A stretch of DNA of 64,000 nucleotides, taken from the sequence record PP885688.1. The stretch is one strand, 5' to 3'. Position 1 is the stretch's first letter. Every line of letters begins with the position of its first letter. The notes below the pieces were generated by a model. It ran no database searches. It was given only the letters and a program-made list of their open reading frames with translations, and was not told the origin of the DNA. This document shows positions 2,002-62,801 of this stretch, one piece after another. Position numbers and translations under genes: made by a program.

Positions 2002-2442
2002 ATGGATCCAGTGGCAGACGGCGGCGGCACCATTACGTTGGGCGTGGGTAGACTCTTCGAGTACCTAGCCTCCGCGTCGATCCCGGGCCTGGCCTGGCTC
2101 ACACGGGCCTACATCACTCTTCAGAACCGCATGACGAAGCTTGAGACTCTGGTCCAGGAACGTCTCGCCGGTGTCGCAGAGATGACCCAGAAGCAACAGG
2201 CCGACAGCAACCGTATCGCGCTCGTTGAAGCTGGTGTTGCCCACCTCACCGCCATGCAGCAACAGTCGGACAATCGTTTCGCAGAGGTGTCCAAGCAGTT
2301 GGAGATCCTGCCACGTATCGATGAGTCCTTGAAGTATCTAGCCCGCGTCTGCGCCACCATCGTTCCTCGCGAAGAGTGGGAGCAGAACAACCGTCATATA
2401 GAGGGACGGTTGAACCGTGTTGATGGTCAGACCAAGGGCTAA
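2002..2442 (+). CDS. Membrane-anchored coiled-coil protein (holin/XhlA-like candidate)
   Basis: GGGAG SD before ATG 2002; one hydrophobic segment followed by long heptad coiled coil. Confidence 0.45.
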   Translation: MDPVADGGGTITLGVGRLFEYLASASIPGLAWLTRAYITLQNRMTKLETLVQERLAGVAEMTQKQQADSNRIALVEAGVAHLTAMQQQSDNRFAEVSKQLEILPRIDESLKYLARVCATIVPREEWEQNNRHIEGRLNRVDGQTKG

Positions 2443-3239
2443 CTGATCAGTTGGTCAAAACCACACATAAGAAAGCAGTTACTCCACCCTGGGTAACGTG
2501 GTTACCAATTCTCAGCTGAAACTTTACTGAGTACCACGAACGAAAAGCGAAGAAGCGCTAGCGTTCCTATGTGGCTCGAAACCGTGCAATTAAGTGCACT
2601 TATCAAGCTTGATCCTCCCCTAAAATATAAGGAAGCGCTGTAAGTCCACATAAGCATGGCTTTAGATGTTTATAAGTTAGTAACTAAAGTGGGAAAAAAT
2701 TACCGGGTCGCTGCGCAAAATATTCGCTTTTCCACAGGAAGACATTGCAGGGTCTTGCTACACTCGATCTCATAACACCAGAGTAATGCGGTTACGAAGG
2801 GTACACCTCCGGACACGCCAATCGAAGTGAGGAAACATTTTGCGAACAGGAAAGAATCTACCAGTGCTATCCAGGAATGACCGGAAGCATGCCTCAGCAT
2901 TTCAGGCCACCAGGACGCAAGTCTGCGCACCACTCCCCGCATCACCCCTCTACTCCATTCCAGGGTACGGTTCCCCACCAAGGATCGAATGGAAAAAATA
3001 ATTTCAATTTTTTTCATTCAGTAATTGGGTAAGCAGCTTCAGGTTGGGTATTAGCAATTGTCGACAGTAGAAAAAGTCACTTTCGACATGAGGCTCAGCT
3101 CAACCTAACTGGACCAAACAGACAAGTCGTTACAACGGTGAACCGGTTCCGCTCCGATGATAGAAATCATCGAGCCCCAGTCATCACACGCCCTACCTGT
3201 CTCCAGAAACGGAAACCGTAACACTGCAATGGAGGCAAC
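2443..3239. other. AT-richer, palindrome-rich non-coding region (origin/pac/leader candidate)
   Basis: About 800 bp without a credible ORF; palindromes AACTGATCAGTT, ATCAAGCTTGAT, GAACCGGTTC and hairpins GGTAAC/GTTACC, CGATGAT/ATCATCG. Confidence 0.6.
3022..3054 (+). promoter_or_regulatory. Class 1 phage promoter (TAAT-N20-GGGTATTAG)
   Basis: Matches motif repeated 15 times with a 20-nt spacer; upstream of the sigma-like gene. Confidence 0.8.
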
Positions 3240-4220
3240 TTGAACACTGCTATTTTGACCCTGGGCAATGCACCCTCGATCAACGTGAACTTCGATGAAT
3301 CAACCGTAGCTGAACTGAACGCACTATCTGTCATTACAGACGAAGCCATCGCCGAAGTGGATTTTGATGGCGTTGATGATATTTCCGACGACGTTGACAC
3401 ACTCGATGTCGCCCCCGCCGCTGAGCAAGTCTCAAAGCGCGATCCTTACAGCCGCTCCGAAGACGGTCACTTCATTGGCCACGACGGATTCGTCGTTCCC
3501 CTGAACTTCGAAGAGTTCTACGAACGCTACCCCAAGTATGTCAAGGGATTCATCCGCCGCCTCTGGCACCGCGCCAGTGAGGCCGAGATCGAGGACCGCG
3601 AGAGCGAGCTCCACATCTTCCTGATGACTCTTCCCGAAGGATCGAAGTTCCGTGAGCCCGGCTACAACGGCCTCGAAGATGGTTGCACCGACCGCGTCCA
3701 GATCTTCAACCCTGAGGCCCTCGGCTCTTCAGCTCCGCGCTTCTTCCACTACATCAATACCTGCCTGACGCGCCACTTCTACTCTCTCGCGAAGAAGGCT
3801 GCCTCGAACCCGATCCGCCGCTACAACACGCTGAGCCTCTACTCCCCCGATGGTCAGGGACAGATGATCGACGAAGACTACATCTACACGATGACCAGCG
3901 AACAGGCGAACGCCGGTGTGAACTACGATCAGGTGATTCAGGACGGCGTCTTCGTCAGCCAGTACATCGCGTTTGTCGAGGAGCACAACCCCGAGCTGAT
4001 CCCGGTCATCAACGCGATTCAGGCCTTCGAGACCTACGTGGAGGCGATGAACAATCTCGGCATGACTGAGAAGATGTTTATTCGCGCCCGCAACCGTCTC
4101 GTCGTGCTTCACTCGGCATTCGACAAAGGTGTAAATCCCCCGCGCCAGCGTAAGGTTTATCGCGCTCGTGCGGTTGCGGAGAGCACCAAAATTTCTTCAG
4201 AAAATCTCGTCGCAGTATAA
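3240..4220 (+). CDS. Phage-encoded sigma-70-family (ECF-like) factor
   Basis: Region-2-like FEEFYERYPKYVKGFIRR...EIEDRESELHIFL...FFHYINTCLTRHF; region-4-like HTH YVEAMNNLGMTEKMFIRARNRL; GGAGG SD with TTG start. Confidence 0.6.
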   Translation: MNTAILTLGNAPSINVNFDESTVAELNALSVITDEAIAEVDFDGVDDISDDVDTLDVAPAAEQVSKRDPYSRSEDGHFIGHDGFVVPLNFEEFYERYPKYVKGFIRRLWHRASEAEIEDRESELHIFLMTLPEGSKFREPGYNGLEDGCTDRVQIFNPEALGSSAPRFFHYINTCLTRHFYSLAKKAASNPIRRYNTLSLYSPDGQGQMIDEDYIYTMTSEQANAGVNYDQVIQDGVFVSQYIAFVEEHNPELIPVINAIQAFETYVEAMNNLGMTEKMFIRARNRLVVLHSAFDKGVNPPRQRKVYRARAVAESTKISSENLVAV

Positions 4221-4248
4221 GGGTAAGCGGTCGGTTTTTGAGTATTAG
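4216..4248 (+). promoter_or_regulatory. Class 1 promoter (TATA-N20-GAGTATTAG), leaderless ATG 5 nt downstream
   Basis: Motif match; ATG at 4254 has no SD. Confidence 0.75.
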
Positions 4249-4253
4249 ATCTC

Positions 4254-4928
4254 ATGCAAGGTGAGATCGAATACGTAGACGATAACGACTTCGGAGTACA
4301 AGAAGTAGATTTCAACCGCGAGGTGGCGCGGGATCTTTATCGGGCGGGGTTCGGGTCGGCAGACCTCCTCGCCCGGTGGGATCGAATCAAGACCGAGATC
4401 CGGTTCGAGGATGTAGTCGAGCAGGTTCTGGGGTTCACCGATCCAGTCATTCGCTGCCCCTTCCACGGCGGCAAATCCTTCACACTCTACCGGCGCACCA
4501 ACGATGCCTACTGCTACGGATGCCCTCCCGGCAAAGGCTACTACGACGCAGTCCGCCTGATCGCCTCGCTGAATGGGTACACCACCTCCCAGGCCTGCAC
4601 ATGGCTCGAAAAGCAATACGACCTTCCTCCGCTTGAGAACGTAGCGGACGATGAAGACGAAGACGGGGACGACGAGGATGACACCACTCTCGAGACTCTC
4701 AACTACTCCGATCTGGTAGAGCCCTACATCGCACGTGCTGCCTCCGAGTTCCTGAAGAATCCCGAGCCGGGACTTGCACGCAAGTACATCCAGATCTATT
4801 TCGACAACCTGCCCGACAAGAAGACCGACCTCAACTCTGAAGAGGGTTTGAAGCTGGCCGTTCCGCTCGCGTGCGTTCTCGGTTCCGAAGCCATTGAAGC
4901 AATCAAGATAAAGAGGTTCGGTAAATGA
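4254..4928 (+). CDS. CHC2 zinc-finger protein (primase zinc-binding domain)
   Basis: CPFH...YCYGC motif typical of the DnaG ZBD; no TOPRIM domain. Confidence 0.75.
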   Translation: MQGEIEYVDDNDFGVQEVDFNREVARDLYRAGFGSADLLARWDRIKTEIRFEDVVEQVLGFTDPVIRCPFHGGKSFTLYRRTNDAYCYGCPPGKGYYDAVRLIASLNGYTTSQACTWLEKQYDLPPLENVADDEDEDGDDEDDTTLETLNYSDLVEPYIARAASEFLKNPEPGLARKYIQIYFDNLPDKKTDLNSEEGLKLAVPLACVLGSEAIEAIKIKRFGK

Positions 4929-9196: not shown

Positions 9197-9899
9197 GCGT
9201 CGCGCACGGTTTGCTTTCGAGATGGACAAGAAGGTTACGGTCACCAACAAACGTAACCTGGCCCGTCTTGCCTCCCGCCAGGTCTACGATTCCCTCGCTT
9301 ACGCGCAACGGACCCTCCTCCGCCTGGAGGAATCGGTTCGTTGGATGGCCCACCTGAATCAGGTGGAAGAGCGCCTGCTCCGCATGGGCATTCTTGCGGA
9401 CAAGGACGGCGATCCCGAAGAGAAACGTCTTCGCGCCGCCGCCTTCGAGGCTCTTATGGTTGCCCGGAAGGCCGTCACCACACTCCGCGACCACAAGTCA
9501 GAGATCGCCACGCAGATGGAGGAGGACTTTGATCCGTTCCTCCGCTTATCTGGTCAGCCAAAGGTTGCCAAGAAGCCCGAACCGCCGAAGAAAGCGACAA
9601 CGTTGCAGGAGCAGATGCAACCGCTGGGCGATCCCGCGTCGAAGTGGCAGCCTAAGGCCCCTCCACCAGCTCCCGCCGCATCCAAACCCGCGCCGGTTCA
9701 GGTCAAGCCTGCGCCAGTACCCGCCCCCAAGGCTCCCGCAGCTGCCCCGGCACCTCCGGCCAAGCCCAACCCCATGAAGCTGAAGCTGAATAGTCTTCTT
9801 CTGGCCAAGGCTCGGGCCGAAATCACCGCCCGCGCTAAGGAGAATGCTGAAAACGAGCTATCAGGTCCCTCCTTAGGGACGGTAACTGATGGCAAATAG
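9189..9899 (+). CDS. Hypothetical protein (coiled coil plus Pro/Lys-rich linker)
   Basis: ATG overlaps polA stop; genome-like codon usage. Confidence 0.7.
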   Translation: MPERRARFAFEMDKKVTVTNKRNLARLASRQVYDSLAYAQRTLLRLEESVRWMAHLNQVEERLLRMGILADKDGDPEEKRLRAAAFEALMVARKAVTTLRDHKSEIATQMEEDFDPFLRLSGQPKVAKKPEPPKKATTLQEQMQPLGDPASKWQPKAPPPAPAASKPAPVQVKPAPVPAPKAPAAAPAPPAKPNPMKLKLNSLLLAKARAEITARAKENAENELSGPSLGTVTDGK

Positions 9900-15226: not shown

Positions 15227-16255
15227 ATGCAAGTTTCTAAAGGTTCGCTCTCCAAGATCATCAAGACTATCGACGCCTTCGACCTCACCGGCTCCCCGTT
15301 CGTGGGCATGCAGTGGGGTGAGGCTGGACCTCTGTTTCACCGCGCCGGTCCGGCTGGCTACGTCGAATCGATCGGGTACAAGCCCGGCCCTCCCTCACTC
15401 GTGATCTCAATCACGCATCTGAAGGAGACCCTCGCCCGCTTCGACGATGACATGATCGACATGAGTCAGGATCGCAGCGGCGTGCTGGTGCTAGAAAGCG
15501 TCGGCAGCGCCTTCGGGACGACTCTGCATGTCCACACGGTACGTTCGAACGTGACCTGGGCCCAGACACACAACCCCGGAGAGAGAACGGTACGGCTTGA
15601 GCCGACCGCCTTCGCCGGGATCAACACCTCACCCTTCAAGCTGGCCTCCGCGCCGGTCCTCCGCCAGGGCAAGCTGATGCTCGCCACCGACTACGGCATC
15701 ATCATGCGTTCGCAGGTGCCGGTCGAGGCCTATCCCTATCCGCGCGAGTCCTTCCTGCGCACGATCTCTCCACTGGCGATCGAGGACCTCTTCCTGACCC
15801 AAGCCGGTTACTGGAGTGCCCTCGCTGGCGGCTTCCGCATCATGATCTCCGGCCACCGCACCGGCGATCCTTTCTTCGACATGTACAACCGTGGTGCCGA
15901 GACGCTGGCTGAGATCCCCGCCGCCCGTCTGACCTCCGCTGTGGGCCATGCCGCCGCCATCGCCACCGCCGCCAAGAAGTCCCGCGTCACCTTCGACCCT
16001 ACGCTCGGTCTGGTGGTCGTCGACGGCTACGGCAACGAGGGTAAGTTCGCCCTGGGTACCTCGGCGGCGTGGGAGCGGTTCTCGGTCCCATCCCAGACGG
16101 CCTCCACTCTAGCCGATGTCCTGAAGCAGGGAACCGAGGAGACAGCGCTCCTGCAGCTTGTCGAACCCGGTACCCTGCGCATCACCCGGGGGCTCTGGGA
16201 GGTCTCTTTCAAAATCTTCGCCTCAAATTCATCTCACGACGTTTCTGGTTTGTAG
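15227..16255 (+). CDS. Divergent beta sliding clamp-like protein
   Basis: 342 aa; MQVSKGSLSKII N-terminus and repeated helix/strand pattern resemble DnaN; dnaX present in window. Confidence 0.45.
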   Translation: MQVSKGSLSKIIKTIDAFDLTGSPFVGMQWGEAGPLFHRAGPAGYVESIGYKPGPPSLVISITHLKETLARFDDDMIDMSQDRSGVLVLESVGSAFGTTLHVHTVRSNVTWAQTHNPGERTVRLEPTAFAGINTSPFKLASAPVLRQGKLMLATDYGIIMRSQVPVEAYPYPRESFLRTISPLAIEDLFLTQAGYWSALAGGFRIMISGHRTGDPFFDMYNRGAETLAEIPAARLTSAVGHAAAIATAAKKSRVTFDPTLGLVVVDGYGNEGKFALGTSAAWERFSVPSQTASTLADVLKQGTEETALLQLVEPGTLRITRGLWEVSFKIFASNSSHDVSGL

Positions 16256-18094: not shown

Positions 18095-18121
18095 TTCCTT
18101 CCCTCGATATTGGGGGAAGGG
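18095..18121 (+). repeat. 27-bp direct repeat copy 1 (TTCCTTCCCTCGATATTGGGGGAAGGG)
   Basis: Identical to 18998-19024; forms a hairpin with GATATT in the loop. Confidence 0.9.
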
Positions 18122-18140
18122 ACCCCTGCTTGGGTATTAC
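18108..18140 (+). promoter_or_regulatory. Class 1 promoter (TATT-N20-GGGTATTAC)
   Basis: Motif match. Confidence 0.8.
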
Positions 18141-18162
18141 CTACAGGAATCTTTCTCCCAAT

Positions 18163-18195
18163 TTCATCTTTCGCGGATTTTGGTCCGTAGGTTGA
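18163..18195 (+). promoter_or_regulatory. Class 2 promoter, leaderless ATG 4 nt downstream
   Basis: TTCATCTTT-N15-GTAGGTTGA-GGAT-ATG. Confidence 0.8.
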
Positions 18196-18199
18196 GGAT

Positions 18200-18667
18200 A
18201 TGAGCACCCAAGTTACTGTAAACGTCGAACTTCACCTCTCCCCGTCGTCCGATCTCCCCCGCCTCTACGGGAAGAAGATCAAAGCAGCCGGTGGAAAGTA
18301 CAGCGAGTGCCGTGGATTAGTCCACCGCCGCTACGTTACGCTCCCTGCGACGGCGACCGAGCTGATCGACACCCTCACTTGGGAGTTTGCCGGTGGCCCG
18401 TTCAGCGGCAAGAAGCCAAAGGTCCTAATGATCGCGCGTGAGGAAGGTGTTTCCGCGCACCTTCCAGCCCACCTTATCTGCTACGAGTGGGTTCAGGGCA
18501 GCGGTGTGAATGCTACCGACTACTTCAACAAGCGTTACACCGAAGCCCGCCTTCGGAACCCGATCGTCGAGCCCATCAAGGTTCATCCGCGCATCGCTCT
18601 TGAGAACCAGCTCGCCGTGGCCAAGGAAACTGTCGCTCGGCTCGAAGCGGAATTGGCGACCCTGTAA
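18200..18667 (+). CDS. Hypothetical protein
   Basis: ORF directly after class 2 promoter. Confidence 0.7.
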   Translation: MSTQVTVNVELHLSPSSDLPRLYGKKIKAAGGKYSECRGLVHRRYVTLPATATELIDTLTWEFAGGPFSGKKPKVLMIAREEGVSAHLPAHLICYEWVQGSGVNATDYFNKRYTEARLRNPIVEPIKVHPRIALENQLAVAKETVARLEAELATL

Positions 18668-24141: not shown

Positions 24142-25259
24142 GCATGATCGCCGTCCGGCCTAAGCGCTGGCATGAGGTGATCGGGCAAGACCGGGTAGTG
24201 CGTGTGCTGCACGCGCTACTCCGGATGCCCCAGTTCATGACGCGCGGAATGATCTTTGAAGGACCCTACGCCGTCGGTAAGACGTCGTGTGCGTACATGT
24301 TTTCGAAGGCGCTGATGTGCCTCGATGACAAGCAGCCACTCGGTTGCGGTGTTTGCCCGTCCTGCATCACCGATCTGGACGAGCACAACTCCTTCATGGA
24401 GGTGGATGCTGCGTCGCACTCCGGCGTTGAGCAGGCTCGTGCGCTGATGGCTCGTCTCGATGGACCCTCGAACCTCGGCAAGCGCCACGTGGTGCTCATT
24501 GACGAGGCCCACAGGCTCTCAGTCCAGGCATGGGACATCTTCCTCAAGCCGCTGGAGCTCGGTGACACCTCGGTGGTCTTCCTGTTCGCTACGACCGACC
24601 TCAATGAGATCCCACTGACCATTCAGTCCCGCTGCGCCAAGCTGCGCTTCGGTGCGGTCGATACAGACGATCTCGTGGGGATGCTCACCGCAGTTGCAGA
24701 CGGCAAGCGCATCGCCTACACCAACGACGGTCTGCGTGCAGTAGCAGAGTCAGCCAATGGCCGCCCCCGGGATGCCGTCCTTTCGCTTGCACTCGTTGCT
24801 GCGACCGGAGAAGTCACCCGTGAGAACGCCGAGGCTGCGCTCAACCAGGACGCCAGCTCGATCGCGGCCCAGGTCTTTGTCGCCATCATGGAAGGCAAAG
24901 TCGCTGAAGCTGCGCAGACTGCCGACCGCCTGGCGCAACGCATTGGTCCGGTCAAGGTGATCGAGACTCTGTTCTCGCTCTATGCCCGCGATCTCTTTGA
25001 TGGAGCCAACGTCGCCGAGTACTTCGCTCCGTTGAAAGAGATGACCGCTTTCTTCCTGAAGTGGAACGCGGCCAGCCATCTCCCCGCCGATATCACCCCG
25101 CTCTTCACCATGGAGCTGAGTGAAATGCTGCGGGTCAACTACAAGCCTGTGATGCAGGTGACCGCATCGCCGTCCCAGCCCTCCCCTTCGGGCTCCTCGC
25201 AGACGCGGGGAACCACCGTAAACGAACACACCTTCAAAGAACTGCTCGGAGCACTCTAG
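24138..25259 (+). CDS. dnaX: DNA polymerase III gamma/tau-like clamp loader
   Basis: RPKRWHEVIGQ, GPYAVGKT, CGVCPSC, EVDAASHSGV, LIDEAHRLS, TIQSRC. Confidence 0.92.
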   Translation: MSMIAVRPKRWHEVIGQDRVVRVLHALLRMPQFMTRGMIFEGPYAVGKTSCAYMFSKALMCLDDKQPLGCGVCPSCITDLDEHNSFMEVDAASHSGVEQARALMARLDGPSNLGKRHVVLIDEAHRLSVQAWDIFLKPLELGDTSVVFLFATTDLNEIPLTIQSRCAKLRFGAVDTDDLVGMLTAVADGKRIAYTNDGLRAVAESANGRPRDAVLSLALVAATGEVTRENAEAALNQDASSIAAQVFVAIMEGKVAEAAQTADRLAQRIGPVKVIETLFSLYARDLFDGANVAEYFAPLKEMTAFFLKWNAASHLPADITPLFTMELSEMLRVNYKPVMQVTASPSQPSPSGSSQTRGTTVNEHTFKELLGAL

Positions 25260-26293
25260 TGATATTGACGTACGGCGACACTTCTTCTTTTGGCGATCTG
25301 CAGTGGTATATGGTCGAGCTCCGTTCGGAGCGCACAGTTGAATCCACGCTTCGCCGCCTTGGTCAAACCCTGCAGAAGATCTTCCGCGACACAGCGGTCG
25401 AACTCTTTCTGCCGATCCAGATTCGTGATCTGCACAACTTCGAGCTGAGCACAGGGAACTACATCTTTGCCCGCTCGCCCCAGTTTTCCCGCTTGCTTGC
25501 CATGCGTGCCGTGACCGGCGTCGTCGGTCTGGTGTGCGAGGGCGATATCAAGCACGCCTCCAAGGTCATCCCGGTCGATCACGAGTTCGTGAAGAAGATC
25601 ATCGACCAGGCTGAACTCGAATTCCTCGACCGCGCCAAGGATATCGACGTTGGCAGCTTCGTCCGCATCATCGACGGCGAGATGCGCGACTGGTGCGGCA
25701 CGGTCACCGAGATTCACGACGGTGTGGCAGCGGTCAAGGTGGAGATCAAGACCAAGACCATGCTGATCGAGACTCCCGTACGCAACCTGCTCGACAAGAG
25801 CTTTGTCCCGGCCTCCCTGCGTGTCTTCTATTACGGCGAGCTGGTGGAGGGTCTCGAGACTCTGGGCCTTGCTCATCTCCTTGCGGAGGATCTGCACTTC
25901 ACTCCTGACGTGGAGTCTGCGGATGATGGCCTCGAAGCACCGGCACCCGCCAAGCATGGCCGCCAGCAGACTGTGACGGCCCTGGTGAAGCGTCTGATCG
26001 TCACCGGAACCCTTGACCCCAACGTGATCGGTCGCGCGGTCCTGGAGGCTCTGATGGCAGGAGCGCTCAAGGCTCCGAAGAATCTCTCGATCGTGCACGG
26101 GATCATCAAGAACCGCATGATCGAAGACCACTTCAAGGCGATCGACCCCACCATCGAGAACTATCGCGATGTGGTGGAGCGATTCGGTCAGGCCTACAAG
26201 TTCTCTCTTCAGGATCTGGTCAAGTTGGACCCCGGCACCGGGATTCCACTGACGACCGAAGAAGACGACACCCAGGAGGTCACGCATGAGTGA
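25259..26293 (+). CDS. NusG-family transcription factor (NGN plus KOW) with C-terminal extension
   Basis: WYMV start, GNYIFAR, VTGVVGLV, KOW DVGSFVRIIDGEMRDWCGTVTEI. Confidence 0.8.
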   Translation: MILTYGDTSSFGDLQWYMVELRSERTVESTLRRLGQTLQKIFRDTAVELFLPIQIRDLHNFELSTGNYIFARSPQFSRLLAMRAVTGVVGLVCEGDIKHASKVIPVDHEFVKKIIDQAELEFLDRAKDIDVGSFVRIIDGEMRDWCGTVTEIHDGVAAVKVEIKTKTMLIETPVRNLLDKSFVPASLRVFYYGELVEGLETLGLAHLLAEDLHFTPDVESADDGLEAPAPAKHGRQQTVTALVKRLIVTGTLDPNVIGRAVLEALMAGALKAPKNLSIVHGIIKNRMIEDHFKAIDPTIENYRDVVERFGQAYKFSLQDLVKLDPGTGIPLTTEEDDTQEVTHE

Positions 26294-45382: not shown

Positions 45383-45415
45383 TATCTCGGTAAGCAGGCC
45401 CTCCATGGGTATTAG
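45383..45415 (+). promoter_or_regulatory. Class 1 promoter (TATC-N20-GGGTATTAG)
   Basis: Motif match. Confidence 0.75.
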
Positions 45416-45434
45416 CCCGTGGAGGGCTTTTCTT
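45398..45434 (+). terminator. Terminator-like hairpin enclosing the class 1 downstream element
   Basis: GCCCTCCATGGGT-ATTA-GCCCGTGGAGGGC followed by TTTTCTT. Confidence 0.6.
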
Positions 45435-46397
45435 ATGGCCGAATGGTATGGACGAATGATGCAGGTCGCAGATCTCTGCGCCACATGGAGTAAAGACAAG
45501 AGTCGCGGCGTCGGTTGTGTGGTCTTCGACCCTTATACGCATGGCGTCCTCGCGCAGGGTTTCAACGGCTTCCCGCGTGGTGTGAACGAGAACATCCCCG
45601 AGCGTAACGAGCGGCCCCTCAAGTACAAGTACACTGTGCACGCGGAGATCAACGCGATCGCCCATTGCGCGAAGAACGGGATCAGCACCAACGGCATGAG
45701 CATGGCGGTGACCTTCTTCCCGTGTGCGCCTTGCGCCAACGCAGCGATCCAGGCAGGCATCTGTGAGCTGGTGGTGCCGGACACCGACTTCGACGATGAG
45801 CGCTGGGGAGCTGATTTCAAAGAGAGCCTGCAGATCCTCACCGAAGGTCACGTCAAGATCGTGTACCTGGTGCCGGTGACGATCACCGAGAGGGCCGAGT
45901 CTGGAGAATGGGTCACGTCGACGAAGCTGATACCTGTCACAGAATGGGATGAAAACCGTTGCTACCAGGAGGGAGATCAGGTCCGGTTCCTCGGTGTGCC
46001 ATATCGTTGCCTCCGGAACAACGAACACGGCTGGAAGCCGGATACGAGCTCCGCTTCGTGGATTGAGATCGGCCCGAAGCCAGCGATCCAACCTTGGAAC
46101 CGGGTAACGATCTACTACCACAGGGACAGGTGCACTTACAGGGGCGGCACCTTCGAATCACTGCTCCTCGCACAGAACGGATTCTATCCCGACATGTATC
46201 CCAATATGTGGATGCAGGTCGACGGCGACATGGTCGCGCCGCCACCGCAGTGGAACGCCGCTCTGTTTTACCTCGTCGATTCGGTCGTTCACTATCACGG
46301 TCGCAAGTACACCTCGCTCAGGCAGTCAAACGGCAGTGAAGGTGACCCTGAGACCGACCTCCGTTCATGGGCTCCCCTGGCCGACGACGCCGACTAA
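45435..46397 (+). CDS. dCMP deaminase fused to three CBM5/12-like repeats
   Basis: SKD...VGCV, GFNG, HAEINAI, PCAPC; C-terminal W...Y..GD.V...G..Y...W repeats. Confidence 0.85.
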   Translation: MAEWYGRMMQVADLCATWSKDKSRGVGCVVFDPYTHGVLAQGFNGFPRGVNENIPERNERPLKYKYTVHAEINAIAHCAKNGISTNGMSMAVTFFPCAPCANAAIQAGICELVVPDTDFDDERWGADFKESLQILTEGHVKIVYLVPVTITERAESGEWVTSTKLIPVTEWDENRCYQEGDQVRFLGVPYRCLRNNEHGWKPDTSSASWIEIGPKPAIQPWNRVTIYYHRDRCTYRGGTFESLLLAQNGFYPDMYPNMWMQVDGDMVAPPPQWNAALFYLVDSVVHYHGRKYTSLRQSNGSEGDPETDLRSWAPLADDAD

Positions 46398-46419: not shown

Positions 46420-46452
46420 TAATCACTGTCGCGGCCCTCGGATGGGTATTAC
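46420..46452 (+). promoter_or_regulatory. Class 1 promoter (TAAT-N20-GGGTATTAC)
   Basis: Motif match. Confidence 0.8.
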
Positions 46453-46470
46453 GTATCGAGGGCCACGATT

Positions 46471-48027
46471 GTGACGAAGAAGTTAGACGCACCAAACAAG
46501 ACTGCTGAAGTATTCGCGATCCACGGGGCAGACCCCGAAGTTCAGGCCTATGCCATGGCCAAGTACTCCCGCTCGGCGCTGTCGATGGCTGAGTCCATCA
46601 AGGAAATCTCGAGCCAGAAGGCGGAGACGTTCCTCAACAGCTTCTATTTCCAGTACGGCCACAAGTCCATCGCCGACCTCGCGCACATTCCAATGGCGAT
46701 CGAGAACATCAGCCTGTTGGCTGCGATCGATGTGGTGGATGAGCAGCGCTGGGATGGACAGGAACGCTCCACCCGATACCAGGACTTCTCCAAGCGCGAG
46801 TACTACGTGCCCGAGGGTATGGATGAGACCGAGACGGTCCACTACCACGCCACGATCAACATGCTCTATGACGCCTACTTCGAAGTCCTCAACGAGGCTA
46901 TCGAGTACTTCACACTCCACAATCCGAAGCCGGAGCACATGGCGCAAGGTCCGTACGAGCGCACCATCAAGGCTCGTGCCTTCGACATCGCCCGCTACCT
47001 ACTGCCGATGGCGACGCTCACCTCGGTCGGCCAGATCAACAGCGCCCGTGCTCTCGAAGGTCAGGTCTCGCGTCTCGCCGCTAGCGTCTACCCCGAAGTG
47101 GTTGATCTAGCGGAGAGCATCAAGGAAGCGGCGACCATCAAGCCGATGTATCTTCCCAACGATCCCGTCTGGGATATTCCAGTGGCATTCCGTGGTGACT
47201 CTGATGCTTATGGAGCGATGCGCAAGGTCTACGCGGCTCCCACGTTGCTGAAGTATGCCGAGCCCAACACCTATAAGTCGAACGCCGCAGACCTCGCCAA
47301 GGGTTATCTGCACGAGCTGAGACTGGACAGTGTCGATCCTGAAGGATGTCGCGAGTCGAATGTGACCATGACCAAACTGGATGCGTGGTCGACTGAGATC
47401 GAGATCCTCACTACCTTCCTCTACGAGCAATCTGACCTGTCGTTCGAGGTGATCCTCAACCGCGTGCGCAACACCGGCACGGAGTTCCGTAGGGACGCGA
47501 TCGCTGCCTTTATGGCGCTGCGTGGTAAGCACGATGAGCTGCTGCGACCTCTGCGTGCCGCTGGCGGAGTCATCTTCGACATCACCATGGACATCGGTGG
47601 TATGCGCGACATGCACAGGCATCGCCGCGCCACCCAGCATCTGCAGCCCTACACGACGACCCTCGGCTTCGTTCAACCTGAGCCCCACGTCAACGCGAAG
47701 GTCGAACGCCTCTACGAAGCCGCAACTCGCAAGATCGTTCACGCCCACGACATCATGCAACAGCTGCGACAGATGCGCGATACAAACGACTCGATCGCGG
47801 ACTACCTCCTGCCGCTCGGTACTCGCTGCCGGTTCCTGATGAAGATGGACGTCGCAGAGATGGCTTACATCGCAGAGCTGCGTACCGGCCCAGCGGGTCA
47901 CATCTCCTACCGCAACGTCGCCTGGGAGGTCTACAACCACCTCGCGTCCTTCGCGCCCACCCTCGCCGAGCAGATCCGCAGCCGCGTCACCGATCCGTCG
48001 GAGCCACTGGACTTCTTCAAGCGATGA
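46471..48027 (+). CDS. thyX: FAD-dependent thymidylate synthase, tandem double-domain type
   Basis: YGHKSIADLAH, QERSTRY in domain 1; RDMHRHRR in domain 2. Confidence 0.88.
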   Translation: MTKKLDAPNKTAEVFAIHGADPEVQAYAMAKYSRSALSMAESIKEISSQKAETFLNSFYFQYGHKSIADLAHIPMAIENISLLAAIDVVDEQRWDGQERSTRYQDFSKREYYVPEGMDETETVHYHATINMLYDAYFEVLNEAIEYFTLHNPKPEHMAQGPYERTIKARAFDIARYLLPMATLTSVGQINSARALEGQVSRLAASVYPEVVDLAESIKEAATIKPMYLPNDPVWDIPVAFRGDSDAYGAMRKVYAAPTLLKYAEPNTYKSNAADLAKGYLHELRLDSVDPEGCRESNVTMTKLDAWSTEIEILTTFLYEQSDLSFEVILNRVRNTGTEFRRDAIAAFMALRGKHDELLRPLRAAGGVIFDITMDIGGMRDMHRHRRATQHLQPYTTTLGFVQPEPHVNAKVERLYEAATRKIVHAHDIMQQLRQMRDTNDSIADYLLPLGTRCRFLMKMDVAEMAYIAELRTGPAGHISYRNVAWEVYNHLASFAPTLAEQIRSRVTDPSEPLDFFKR

Positions 48028-53045: not shown

Positions 53046-53078
53046 TATTGGGTGCACAGAGTCTCCGAACGGTATTAG
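53046..53078 (+). promoter_or_regulatory. Class 1 promoter (TATT-N20-CGGTATTAG)
   Basis: Motif match. Confidence 0.7.
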
Positions 53079-53128
53079 CCCGCAGGAGACTTTATGAAAA
53101 CCGAAATTCTCAACAACGGGGGTTCGCG

Positions 53129-62696: not shown

Positions 62697-62751
62697 GGTG
62701 AGACCTCGTGCTGGAGGTCGGCTGCACCAAAACGCATCGGCCTCTCCATGG

Positions 62752-62784
62752 CTAATACCCACGCGAGAGGCCGATCCTGGATTA
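62752..62784 (-). promoter_or_regulatory. Class 1 promoter (TAAT-N20-GGGTATTAG)
   Basis: Motif match. Confidence 0.8.
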
Positions 62785-62801
62785 TCGAAATGCTTTAATT
62801 T

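Follow-up and report, generated by a model that had tools for sequence, protein, structure and literature searches.

The first 64,000 bases of the genome of Tunturiibacter phage Tunturi_5 (bases 1-64000 of PP885688.1, zero mismatches; hereafter the window) carry an open reading frame (ORF) at 3240-4220 on the plus strand whose product, the 326-aa protein gp3, is very probably a sigma factor. Its predicted fold places gp3 in the sigma-70 family, yet the protein fails the sequence models of that family. A fuller account, which we advance tentatively and hold to be slightly short of an even chance when all its parts are taken together, is that gp3 is a divergent sigma factor of the extracytoplasmic function (ECF) type, driven by a promoter of the phage's class 1 and translated from a gated leader, and that it directs the late genes. 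The phage is a jumbo myovirus of Tunturiibacter psychrotolerans X4BP1 from Finnish tundra soil with a circular record of 308,711 bp, and a tblastn search of phage records with the ORF product returned a single match, Tunturi_5 itself, at 3240-4217.

Since the GenBank record already labels gp3 an "RNA polymerase sigma factor", the bare identification is not new; the paper describing Tunturi_5 makes no mention of sigma factors, RNA polymerase or promoters (PMC11924767). New here are how far the gp3 family extends and in which hosts it occurs, its occurrence on host-genus transposons, the conservation of the gene's leader, and the position of gp3 within a programme that comprises two clearly defined promoter classes and a candidate late motif. 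The outcome is a candidate three-tier transcription programme in which two phage sigma factors find a place and many promoters are apparently leaderless, together with an unnamed sigma-like family that standard annotation misses and that also travels on host-genus transposons. Tunturi 5 is said to be among the first cultured phages of Acidobacteriota, and with its host in culture the predictions made here can be tested at the bench.

Both sigma domains are predicted in gp3

The first-pass annotation of the window had read gp3 as a divergent sigma factor and had named a fold unrelated to sigma-70 regions 2 and 4 as an outcome that would speak against this. The AlphaFold models contain both a domain 2 and a domain 4 fold, so that this objection does not arise; the class 1 promoter and the long leader described in that annotation also proved genuine, whereas homology of the N-terminus to region 1.1 is not supported. 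The full-length model, built with AlphaFold2 on 34 homologues, has a predicted local distance difference test (pLDDT) score above 90 for residues 70-190 and 240-300. Its best matches among 48,161 PDB representatives are almost all sigma factors, with ECF and group 3 sigmas dominating the lists, and its whole-chain alignments run to the sigB, SigL and SigH holoenzymes; Foldseek, given the same model, returned sigma factors too, at E >0.07.

Domain 2 (aa 66-200, bases 3435-3839), modelled alone from 76 sequences, reached a pLDDT of 94.3. In the VIA search with this model, 17 of the 17 top matches are sigma region 2 (Z 4.7-5.9, root-mean-square deviation (rmsd) 2.4-4.2 Å over 71-96 residues). The domain matches sigB (Z 5.9, rmsd 3.0 over 82 residues), T4 gp55 (7d7d_F; Z 5.5, rmsd 2.4 Å over 79 residues), AlgU, SigH, the promoter-specificity subunit of AR9 and phiEco32 gp36 (9m7y_F, Z 5.1), and Foldseek ranked first sigmaE region 2 on its -10 DNA (prob 0.66-0.85, E >0.1). 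The domain 4-like helix-turn-helix (HTH) spans aa 230-299 (3927-4136; LGMTEKMFIRARNRLVVL), and VIA aligned residues 229-298 with region 4 of sigma-H (3mzy_A) at Z 7.4 and rmsd 2.5 Å over 69 residues, followed in the list by SigD4, CnrH, SigF, BldN, SigK and SigW; HTH domains of the LuxR/FixJ type score only slightly lower against this part of gp3 (Z 5.5-6.5).

A comparison of families by hhalign, in which 77 gp3-family sequences were set against an ECF family made up of gp211, the second sigma factor of the phage, and six of its relatives, gave a probability of 61% (E 7.9e-5), with regions 2.1-2.4 in register and about 30 gp3 residues treated as an insertion; a shallower gp3 alignment scored 6% against the same family, with region 4.2 aligned too. 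The segment RFFHYINTCLTRHF falls on the ECF motif 'sfstW..rIa.N' and LGMTEKMFIRARNRL on region 4.2. Fitted by eye, FEEFYERYPKYV corresponds to region 2.1, EIEDRESELHIFLM to region 2.2, RFFHYINTCLTRHF to region 2.3/2.4 and LGMTEKMFIRARNRLVVL to region 4.2. We infer that gp3 would bind the RNA polymerase core.

Conserved modules and the acidic N-terminus

The TTG start proposed in the first-pass annotation is borne out: it is the most upstream in-frame start, with GGAGG at 3231-3235, 4 nt ahead, and the homologue on L019 also begins with TTG in the same TTGAACAC context. Because a 'PSINV' near the N-terminus is common to gp3 and its closest homologue, this part of the protein is translated. The Asp/Glu-rich stretch of about 60 aa that had been noticed there is real as well, residues 1-65 (3240-3434) holding 15 D/E and 0 K/R. 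A net negative N-terminal charge (-5 to -10) recurs only in the homologues of the phage clade and not in those of the transposon/chromosomal clade. Residues 6-63 have a pLDDT <50 in the AlphaFold2 model and form one short helix only, and sequence conservation of the extension was not found in the alignment of 34 homologues.

In group 1 sigmas, region 1.1 forms a helical domain that is folded. The likeness to it that had been suggested for gp3 holds for composition, both having an acidic N-terminal segment ahead of region 2, and fails for homology; a true region 1.1 was rejected because the segment is predicted to be disordered and is unconserved, and because it is absent or non-acidic in the transposon clade.

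The region-2-like and region-4-like segments are indeed split by insertions, with about 30 residues inserted inside domain 2 and a linker some 40 residues long joining the domains. With a beta-hairpin and a basic tail, these make up four conserved additions in the family alignment. The beta-hairpin (DGHFIGHDGFVVP, aa 75-87; family motif DGHxVGxDGFVVP) lies just ahead of region 2.1. The insert in domain 2 (aa 130-164, 3627-3731) carries an invariant G-C-x-D-R-x-Q-x-F-x-P motif and with it the most invariant residues of the whole family, G148, C149, D151, R152, Q154, F156 and P158. Beyond domain 4, the basic tail (PPRQRKVYRAR, aa 300-312, 4137-4175) has P300, P301, R302, Q303, R304, K305 and Y307 invariant or nearly so among the 34 homologues. 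To our knowledge, no described sigma has the conserved modules of gp3.

Comparison with known sigma factors

Like the ECF (group 4) sigmas, among them E. coli sigma E, M. tuberculosis SigL and SigH, and gp211, gp3 consists of sigma 2 and sigma 4 without regions 1.1 and 3. Its regions 2.1-2.4 superpose on theirs at rmsd 2.4-3.0 Å (about 80 residues) and its 4.2 HTH at 2.5 Å (69 residues), and the register of the ECF motifs (ED..E..L, F..Y/W....L.N, RAR..L) is kept. It differs from them in being invisible to Pfam, and in its domain 2 insert, beta-hairpin, linker of about 40 aa and basic tail, to which the phage clade adds an acidic N-terminus that is predicted to be disordered.

T4 gp55 offers a second comparison, being likewise a highly divergent phage sigma to which generic sigma hidden Markov models (HMMs) are blind and which is encoded among replication genes; it is made before the late genes, which gp3 is proposed to drive in the same way. 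However, gp55 has no domain 4 and needs gp33 and gp45, whereas gp3 keeps its domain 4-like HTH and has no evident clamp-binding tail, and the late motif of Tunturi 5 is not TATAAATA. A gp55-type sigma, with domain 2 only, was rejected for gp3 in view of this HTH and of a likeness to gp55 (Z 5.5) no greater than that to cellular sigmas. The SPO1 sigmas gp28 and gp33/34 and the ECF-like gp36 of phiEco32, whose complex is among the domain 2 matches given above, replace the host sigma in a temporal cascade, as is proposed for gp3. There is no detectable sequence relationship between these proteins and gp3, and their promoter motifs are other ones; their role was shown biochemically, whereas that of gp3 is a prediction.

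Class 1 promoters

The class 1 motif that had been placed upstream of gp3 (3022-3054, plus strand) is confirmed at 39.6 bits and is conserved upstream of the homologues in related phages. Its parts are GTAATT at 3022-3027, a GGGTAAGC box at 3027-3034 and a -10-like GGGTATTAG at 3046-3054, with GTATTA at 3048-3053. A matrix of 40 columns anchored on GTATTA, with the consensus aTAtTc-N21-GTATTA(g/c) and tGG ahead, also given as ATAATC-N21-GTATTA, finds 64 sites genome-wide at 21.6-46.8 bits, the next best site having 14.9; a simpler pattern matches 9 times in the window against 0.5 expected. By the annotation of the record, the genes behind class 1 include those for primase, clamp, helicases, dUTPase, thymidylate synthase and SSB, and both sigma genes.

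At 16 of the 64 sites the start codon of a real ORF lies exactly 6 nt past GTATTA, so that transcription would start on the start codon and the mRNAs would be leaderless; taken with 11 class 2 promoters of the same spacing, this implies that leaderless mRNAs, as predicted from sequence, are widespread in an Acidobacteriota phage. Examples of this spacing lie at 4254, 44391, 44490 and 60161 in the window and at 74256, 75703 and others in the record. Most other class 1 sites have leaders of 15-60 nt. The leaderless promoter of the primase gp4 (4215-4253, plus strand; GTATTA 4242-4247, ATG 4254) overlaps the stop codon of gp3. On four related phage contigs (L010, L013, L018 and L019) the gp3 homologue likewise has a class 1 motif upstream, its leader measuring about 170-210 nt, and the leaderless primase promoter recurs after the homologue.

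A perfect inverted repeat of 6-12 bp surrounds the -10 at 12 of the 64 sites (mean 1.9 and maximum 7 in shuffles). The arm on the upstream side often resembles CCTCC and complements the Shine-Dalgarno (SD) sequence of the downstream gene, so that transcripts reading through from upstream might be translationally silent and promoter-initiated ones not. Such repeats were seen at 45388-45440, 46425-46475, 53050-53100 and 62720-62790 in the window, and at 93640-93690 and 218470-218530 in the record.

The leader of gp3

From the end of GTATTA to the TTG, the leader of gp3 (3054-3239) measures 186 nt, matching the estimate of about 185 nt in the first-pass annotation, and by an ORF-based measure it is the second longest behind the 64 class 1 sites. 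The description of this leader as hairpin-rich is weakly supported by energy, the minimum free energy (MFE) of -48.5 kcal/mol not being exceptional (z = -1.5), and is better borne out by two helices conserved in relatives. In the MFE fold a 5' hairpin forms at about 3060-3087. In Tunturi 5, an anti-SD segment, TCTCCA at 3200-3205, pairs with the SD sequence TGGAGG at 3230-3235; since this occupies the ribosome-binding site, translation of gp3 is probably gated or delayed by its leader, as judged from the sequence.

The leader sequence is conserved among relatives, and RNAalifold, applied to seven of them, predicted one long-range helix, which joins two ACGCCCG(T/A)CGTGTG boxes, and a second one in which the SD is covered together with the spacer before the start codon. 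Double changes occur in 6 of 20 leader pairs, seven sequences being too few for statistics. One of the changes is compensatory, CTCCAG/CTGGAG in L010 and L013 having become CTCCGG/CCGGAG in L016, a 46.2-kb IMG/VR contig on which the gp3 homologue has the conserved leader. An Rfam scan of 2300-3400 gave nothing credible and no family matching the gp3 leader.

A second sigma factor, class 2 promoters and a candidate late motif

Tunturi 5 encodes a second, canonical ECF sigma, gp211 (record 151918-152616, minus strand); its gene and that of the HhH protein gp212 are transcribed together, and the class 1 promoter that serves them, at 153223, is leaderless. The unit of the two genes spans record 151918-153211 (L006 35919-37212, minus strand). 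Lying 1 kb upstream, at 154290 on the minus strand, a class 2 site precedes gp214-gp213-gp212-gp211, and no terminator-like hairpin was found between this site and gp211. The notion that relatives keep gp3 and lack gp211 was rejected: a word search gave two close gp211 homologues, and in the 307-kb and 303-kb relatives a gp211-like sigma lies beside the same helicase, in the 307-kb relative with the same HhH-protein partner and a class 1 promoter.

Class 2 promoters (AAAgTCATCTTTGG-N11-TTGTAGGTTGA) number 35 at 33 bits or more, and 11 of them have a start codon exactly 6 nt past TAGGTT. They precede mostly small unknown genes, and also the methyltransferase gp10, the ligase gp61 and the PAPS reductase gp62. 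Those in the window are at 16250, 18193, 42246, 43890, 51772, 52392, 53585, 54783 and 56935, with 26 more elsewhere in the genome. No class 2 site was found upstream of gp3 on the plus strand between 1 and 16258, nor did 63 kb of sequence from two related phages yield one. A 6.8-Mb Tunturiibacter genome has 5 matches at up to 2 mismatches, none exact; this rarity in a host-genus genome speaks neither for nor against reading by host sigma A. Primary sigma factors need A-11 and T-7 in the -10. The class 2 -10, TAGGTT (TAnnnT) at -12 to -7, keeps both, whereas class 1 GTATTA in the same register does not. The two classes stand in tandem before gp11 (window 18113-18200), where the class 1 -10 occupies 18134-18139, the class 2 -10 ends at 18193 and the ATG is at 18200.

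Virion genes are mostly without class 1 and class 2 promoters. Of the late-region genes, 10 of 66 have the motif YYT(T/A)TAGRRR in the 90 nt ahead of them, as against 1 of 229 others (Fisher P = 1.6e-6), and we regard this motif as a candidate third promoter class suggested by sequence, or else as a special translation-initiation context. The genome has 49 copies, frequently preceded by GACTAC or GGAC at a distance of 7-12 nt, and the strict GACTAC-N-TAG pattern has only 8 gene-proximal sites. Sites of the variant form YYT(T/A)0-2TAGRRR are at 9889 and 28055 in the window and at 178571, 179339, 184616, 194322, 196324, 266939, 276420 and 278679 in the record. K-mer statistics with a maximal-order background gave no useful ranking of the promoter motifs, and a seed-matrix motif search was swamped by coding-like composition.

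Distribution of the gp3 family

A word-based search found 34 unnamed homologues of gp3, and an exhaustive profile search gave 425 cluster representatives at E up to 1e-3, with 267 at E up to 1e-10. The family, as delimited by these searches, thus has at least 425 unnamed clusters, with members both in related jumbo phages and, within the host genus, in Tn7-like transposons. The phage clade shares a gene order of terminase, small gene, long gap, gp3, primase and polymerase, seen on the 307-kb contig, a 14.6-kb contig and a 107.6-kb IMG/VR contig (L017). In the bacterial clade, the gp3-like gene directly follows the TnsB-like, TniB, TniQ, TniQ module of Tn7-like transposons, as in the chromosome of Tunturiibacter gelidiferens M8UP28, a member of the host genus, whose transposon copy (L020, 2309667-2322398) is 59% identical to gp3 over the core, and likewise in L014. 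Another bacterial homologue adjoins an integrase on a 648-kb contig, and two distant members of the family are fused to AIPR abortive-infection domains. Among 201 Acidobacteriaceae genomes searched, 10 carry a gp3 homologue; these tallies take in one unpublished genome (G028, with one motif match and no homologue), and no claim hangs on it.

The role of gp3

Given these elements, the programme can be envisioned as follows. Host sigma A would read the class 2 early promoters, and gp211, which is reachable from a class 2 promoter, would switch on class 1. From its class 1 promoter, of the 'middle' or replication-gene type, gp3 would be transcribed into an mRNA whose anti-SD masks the ribosome-binding site, gating or delaying translation. 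Made only from class 1, gp3 would then act as an ECF-like sigma-70-family protein of two domains, redirecting the core RNA polymerase of the host, and would drive late, virion-gene transcription from a third class of motif. We infer this assignment of sigmas to promoter classes from the arrangement of promoters and genes. Since gp3 has only class 1 and no class 2 upstream, and gp211 lies downstream of class 2, the cascade from host to gp211 to gp3 is self-consistent, and its logic is that known from T4 and SPO1. As our best guess, gp3 acts as a late sigma and is itself expressed from a middle promoter, a view favoured by gp211 and the candidate late motif on regulatory logic only.

Several results weigh against this account. 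Pfam, including Sigma70_r2, r4 and r4_2, gave zero matches at E up to 1 for gp3 and 33 homologues, whereas gp211, scanned in the same way, matched r2 at E 2e-11 and r4_2 at E 1.5e-5. The PHROG search of gp3 gave one meaningless match and no sigma, and a PDB sequence search with two profiles gave zero matches even at E = 1-10. The structural Z-scores are modest (5-7.4), in the range below 8 that can be unspecific, especially for helical domains, so that the case for a sigma fold stands on how uniformly the lists consist of sigmas and on both domains being covered. The account also assumes that transcription runs on from the class 2 promoter into gp211. The late motif is short and partly overlaps stop codons and SD sequences. 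Finally, class 1-like motifs are in about threefold excess in Acidobacteriaceae genomes with a gp3 homologue, which fits a reading of class 1 by gp3 at least equally well.

That gp3 itself reads class 1, and so regulates itself positively while gp211 or another factor serves the late genes, is a serious rival, if on balance an unlikely one. The excess just mentioned comes from a scan of the 201 genomes with the strict class 1 pattern at up to 1 mismatch, which gave 24 matches in the 10 genomes with a homologue and 141 in the other 191 (reversed-pattern control about 91), that is, 2.4 against 0.74 per genome (Poisson P 2e-5, and 0.003 without the discovery genome); the association may stem from mobile-element load alone. 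In T. gelidiferens, full class 1-like promoters stand before a 75-aa excisionase-like gene and before integrase genes. The one of the excisionase-like gene (L024, G003 555822-555860) is leaderless with the same 6-nt spacing, and the others are at L021, L022 and L023. Further points in favour are that the same GGGTATTA -10 precedes the gp3 homologue and the adjacent primase in L010, L013, L018 and L019, while the -10 of the gp3 promoter varies in the two most distant phage relatives (GTATTC and GTAATC), and that ECF-type sigmas are commonly autoregulated. However, gp211 is equally conserved in the relatives and is also behind class 1, and the co-occurrence of gp3 and class 1 therefore does not discriminate between the two sigmas. 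Class 1 motifs were looked for beside the chromosomal and transposon homologues of gp3 and none was found, and a gp3 that depended on itself would face a bootstrapping problem, no early-type promoter having been found upstream of it.

It is considerably less probable that gp3 is sigma-like in fold and not an initiation factor, acting as a DNA-binding regulator, a decoy or an anti-sigma-type partner (cf. PhyR), with class 1 and late promoters left to gp211 and host sigmas. Such a role would suit a protein that no sigma HMM detects, whose beta-hairpin, insert of about 30 aa with invariant Cys149 and Asp151, and basic PPRQRKVY tail are all absent from sigma factors, whose family members follow tniQ directly in Tn7-like transposons or in some cases are fused to AIPR domains, and whose structural matches include the sigma-like domain of PhyR (Z 4.4). 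On the other hand, gp3 has both sigma domains in their canonical order and keeps in register an acidic helix like that of region 2.2 (EDRESEL) and the aromatic-plus-Asn motif of region 2.3/2.4, the top structural matches are bona fide sigmas in holoenzyme complexes, and gp3 is a conserved core gene beside replication genes in L010, L013 and L017, as read from their flanks.

Finally, it is very improbable that a host sigma (e.g. of group 3, with a GGGTAT-type -10) reads class 1 and that gp3 serves a small, specialised regulon: the class 1 -10, GGGTAT, does equal the published sigma B/sigma F -10 consensus, as in Firmicutes and Actinobacteria, and the class 1-like promoters in the host-genus chromosome are far from its gp3 homologue, but matches in the 191 genomes without a homologue barely exceed the reversed-pattern control, the 21-bp spacing to the upstream element is unlike that of sigma B promoters, and the motif is conserved across related phages.

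Returning to gp3 as a late sigma, one can envision, as a speculation that we ourselves regard as doubtful, that its family is a deep, Pfam-less branch of sigma-70 belonging to the jumbo phages of Acidobacteriota and to the Tn7-like and integrative elements of their hosts, that its own three modules (beta-hairpin, Cys/Asp insert and basic tail) read an unusual promoter geometry, and that a leader hiding the ribosome-binding site times the switch to late transcription. If the late switch and the gated leader are true, phage temporal control, a classic problem, would gain a new solution, and the promoters and sigma could become genetic tools for a phylum lacking such tools; if gp3 simply reads class 1, it would be an ordinary autoregulated phage sigma.

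Surroundings of gp3

The large terminase gene gp1 and the small gp2 lie upstream of gp3, as does a gap of about 800 nt that is free of ORFs; downstream follow the primase gene gp4 and the DNA polymerase gene gp5. Farther downstream, gp25 (window 25259-26293), annotated as a 'transcription antiterminator', has weak KOW/Spt5 matches (E about 0.03) and may be a NusG paralogue. Between gp2 and the gp3 promoter, 2443-3021 is an ORF-free stretch of about 580 nt, in which the sole ORFs have low GC content at third codon positions (0.44-0.52) and for which there is no Rfam match. A gap of like length (690-770 nt) is kept in relatives, where only the short blocks TTTTCCACAG and ACTTTGCTAAGT are conserved.

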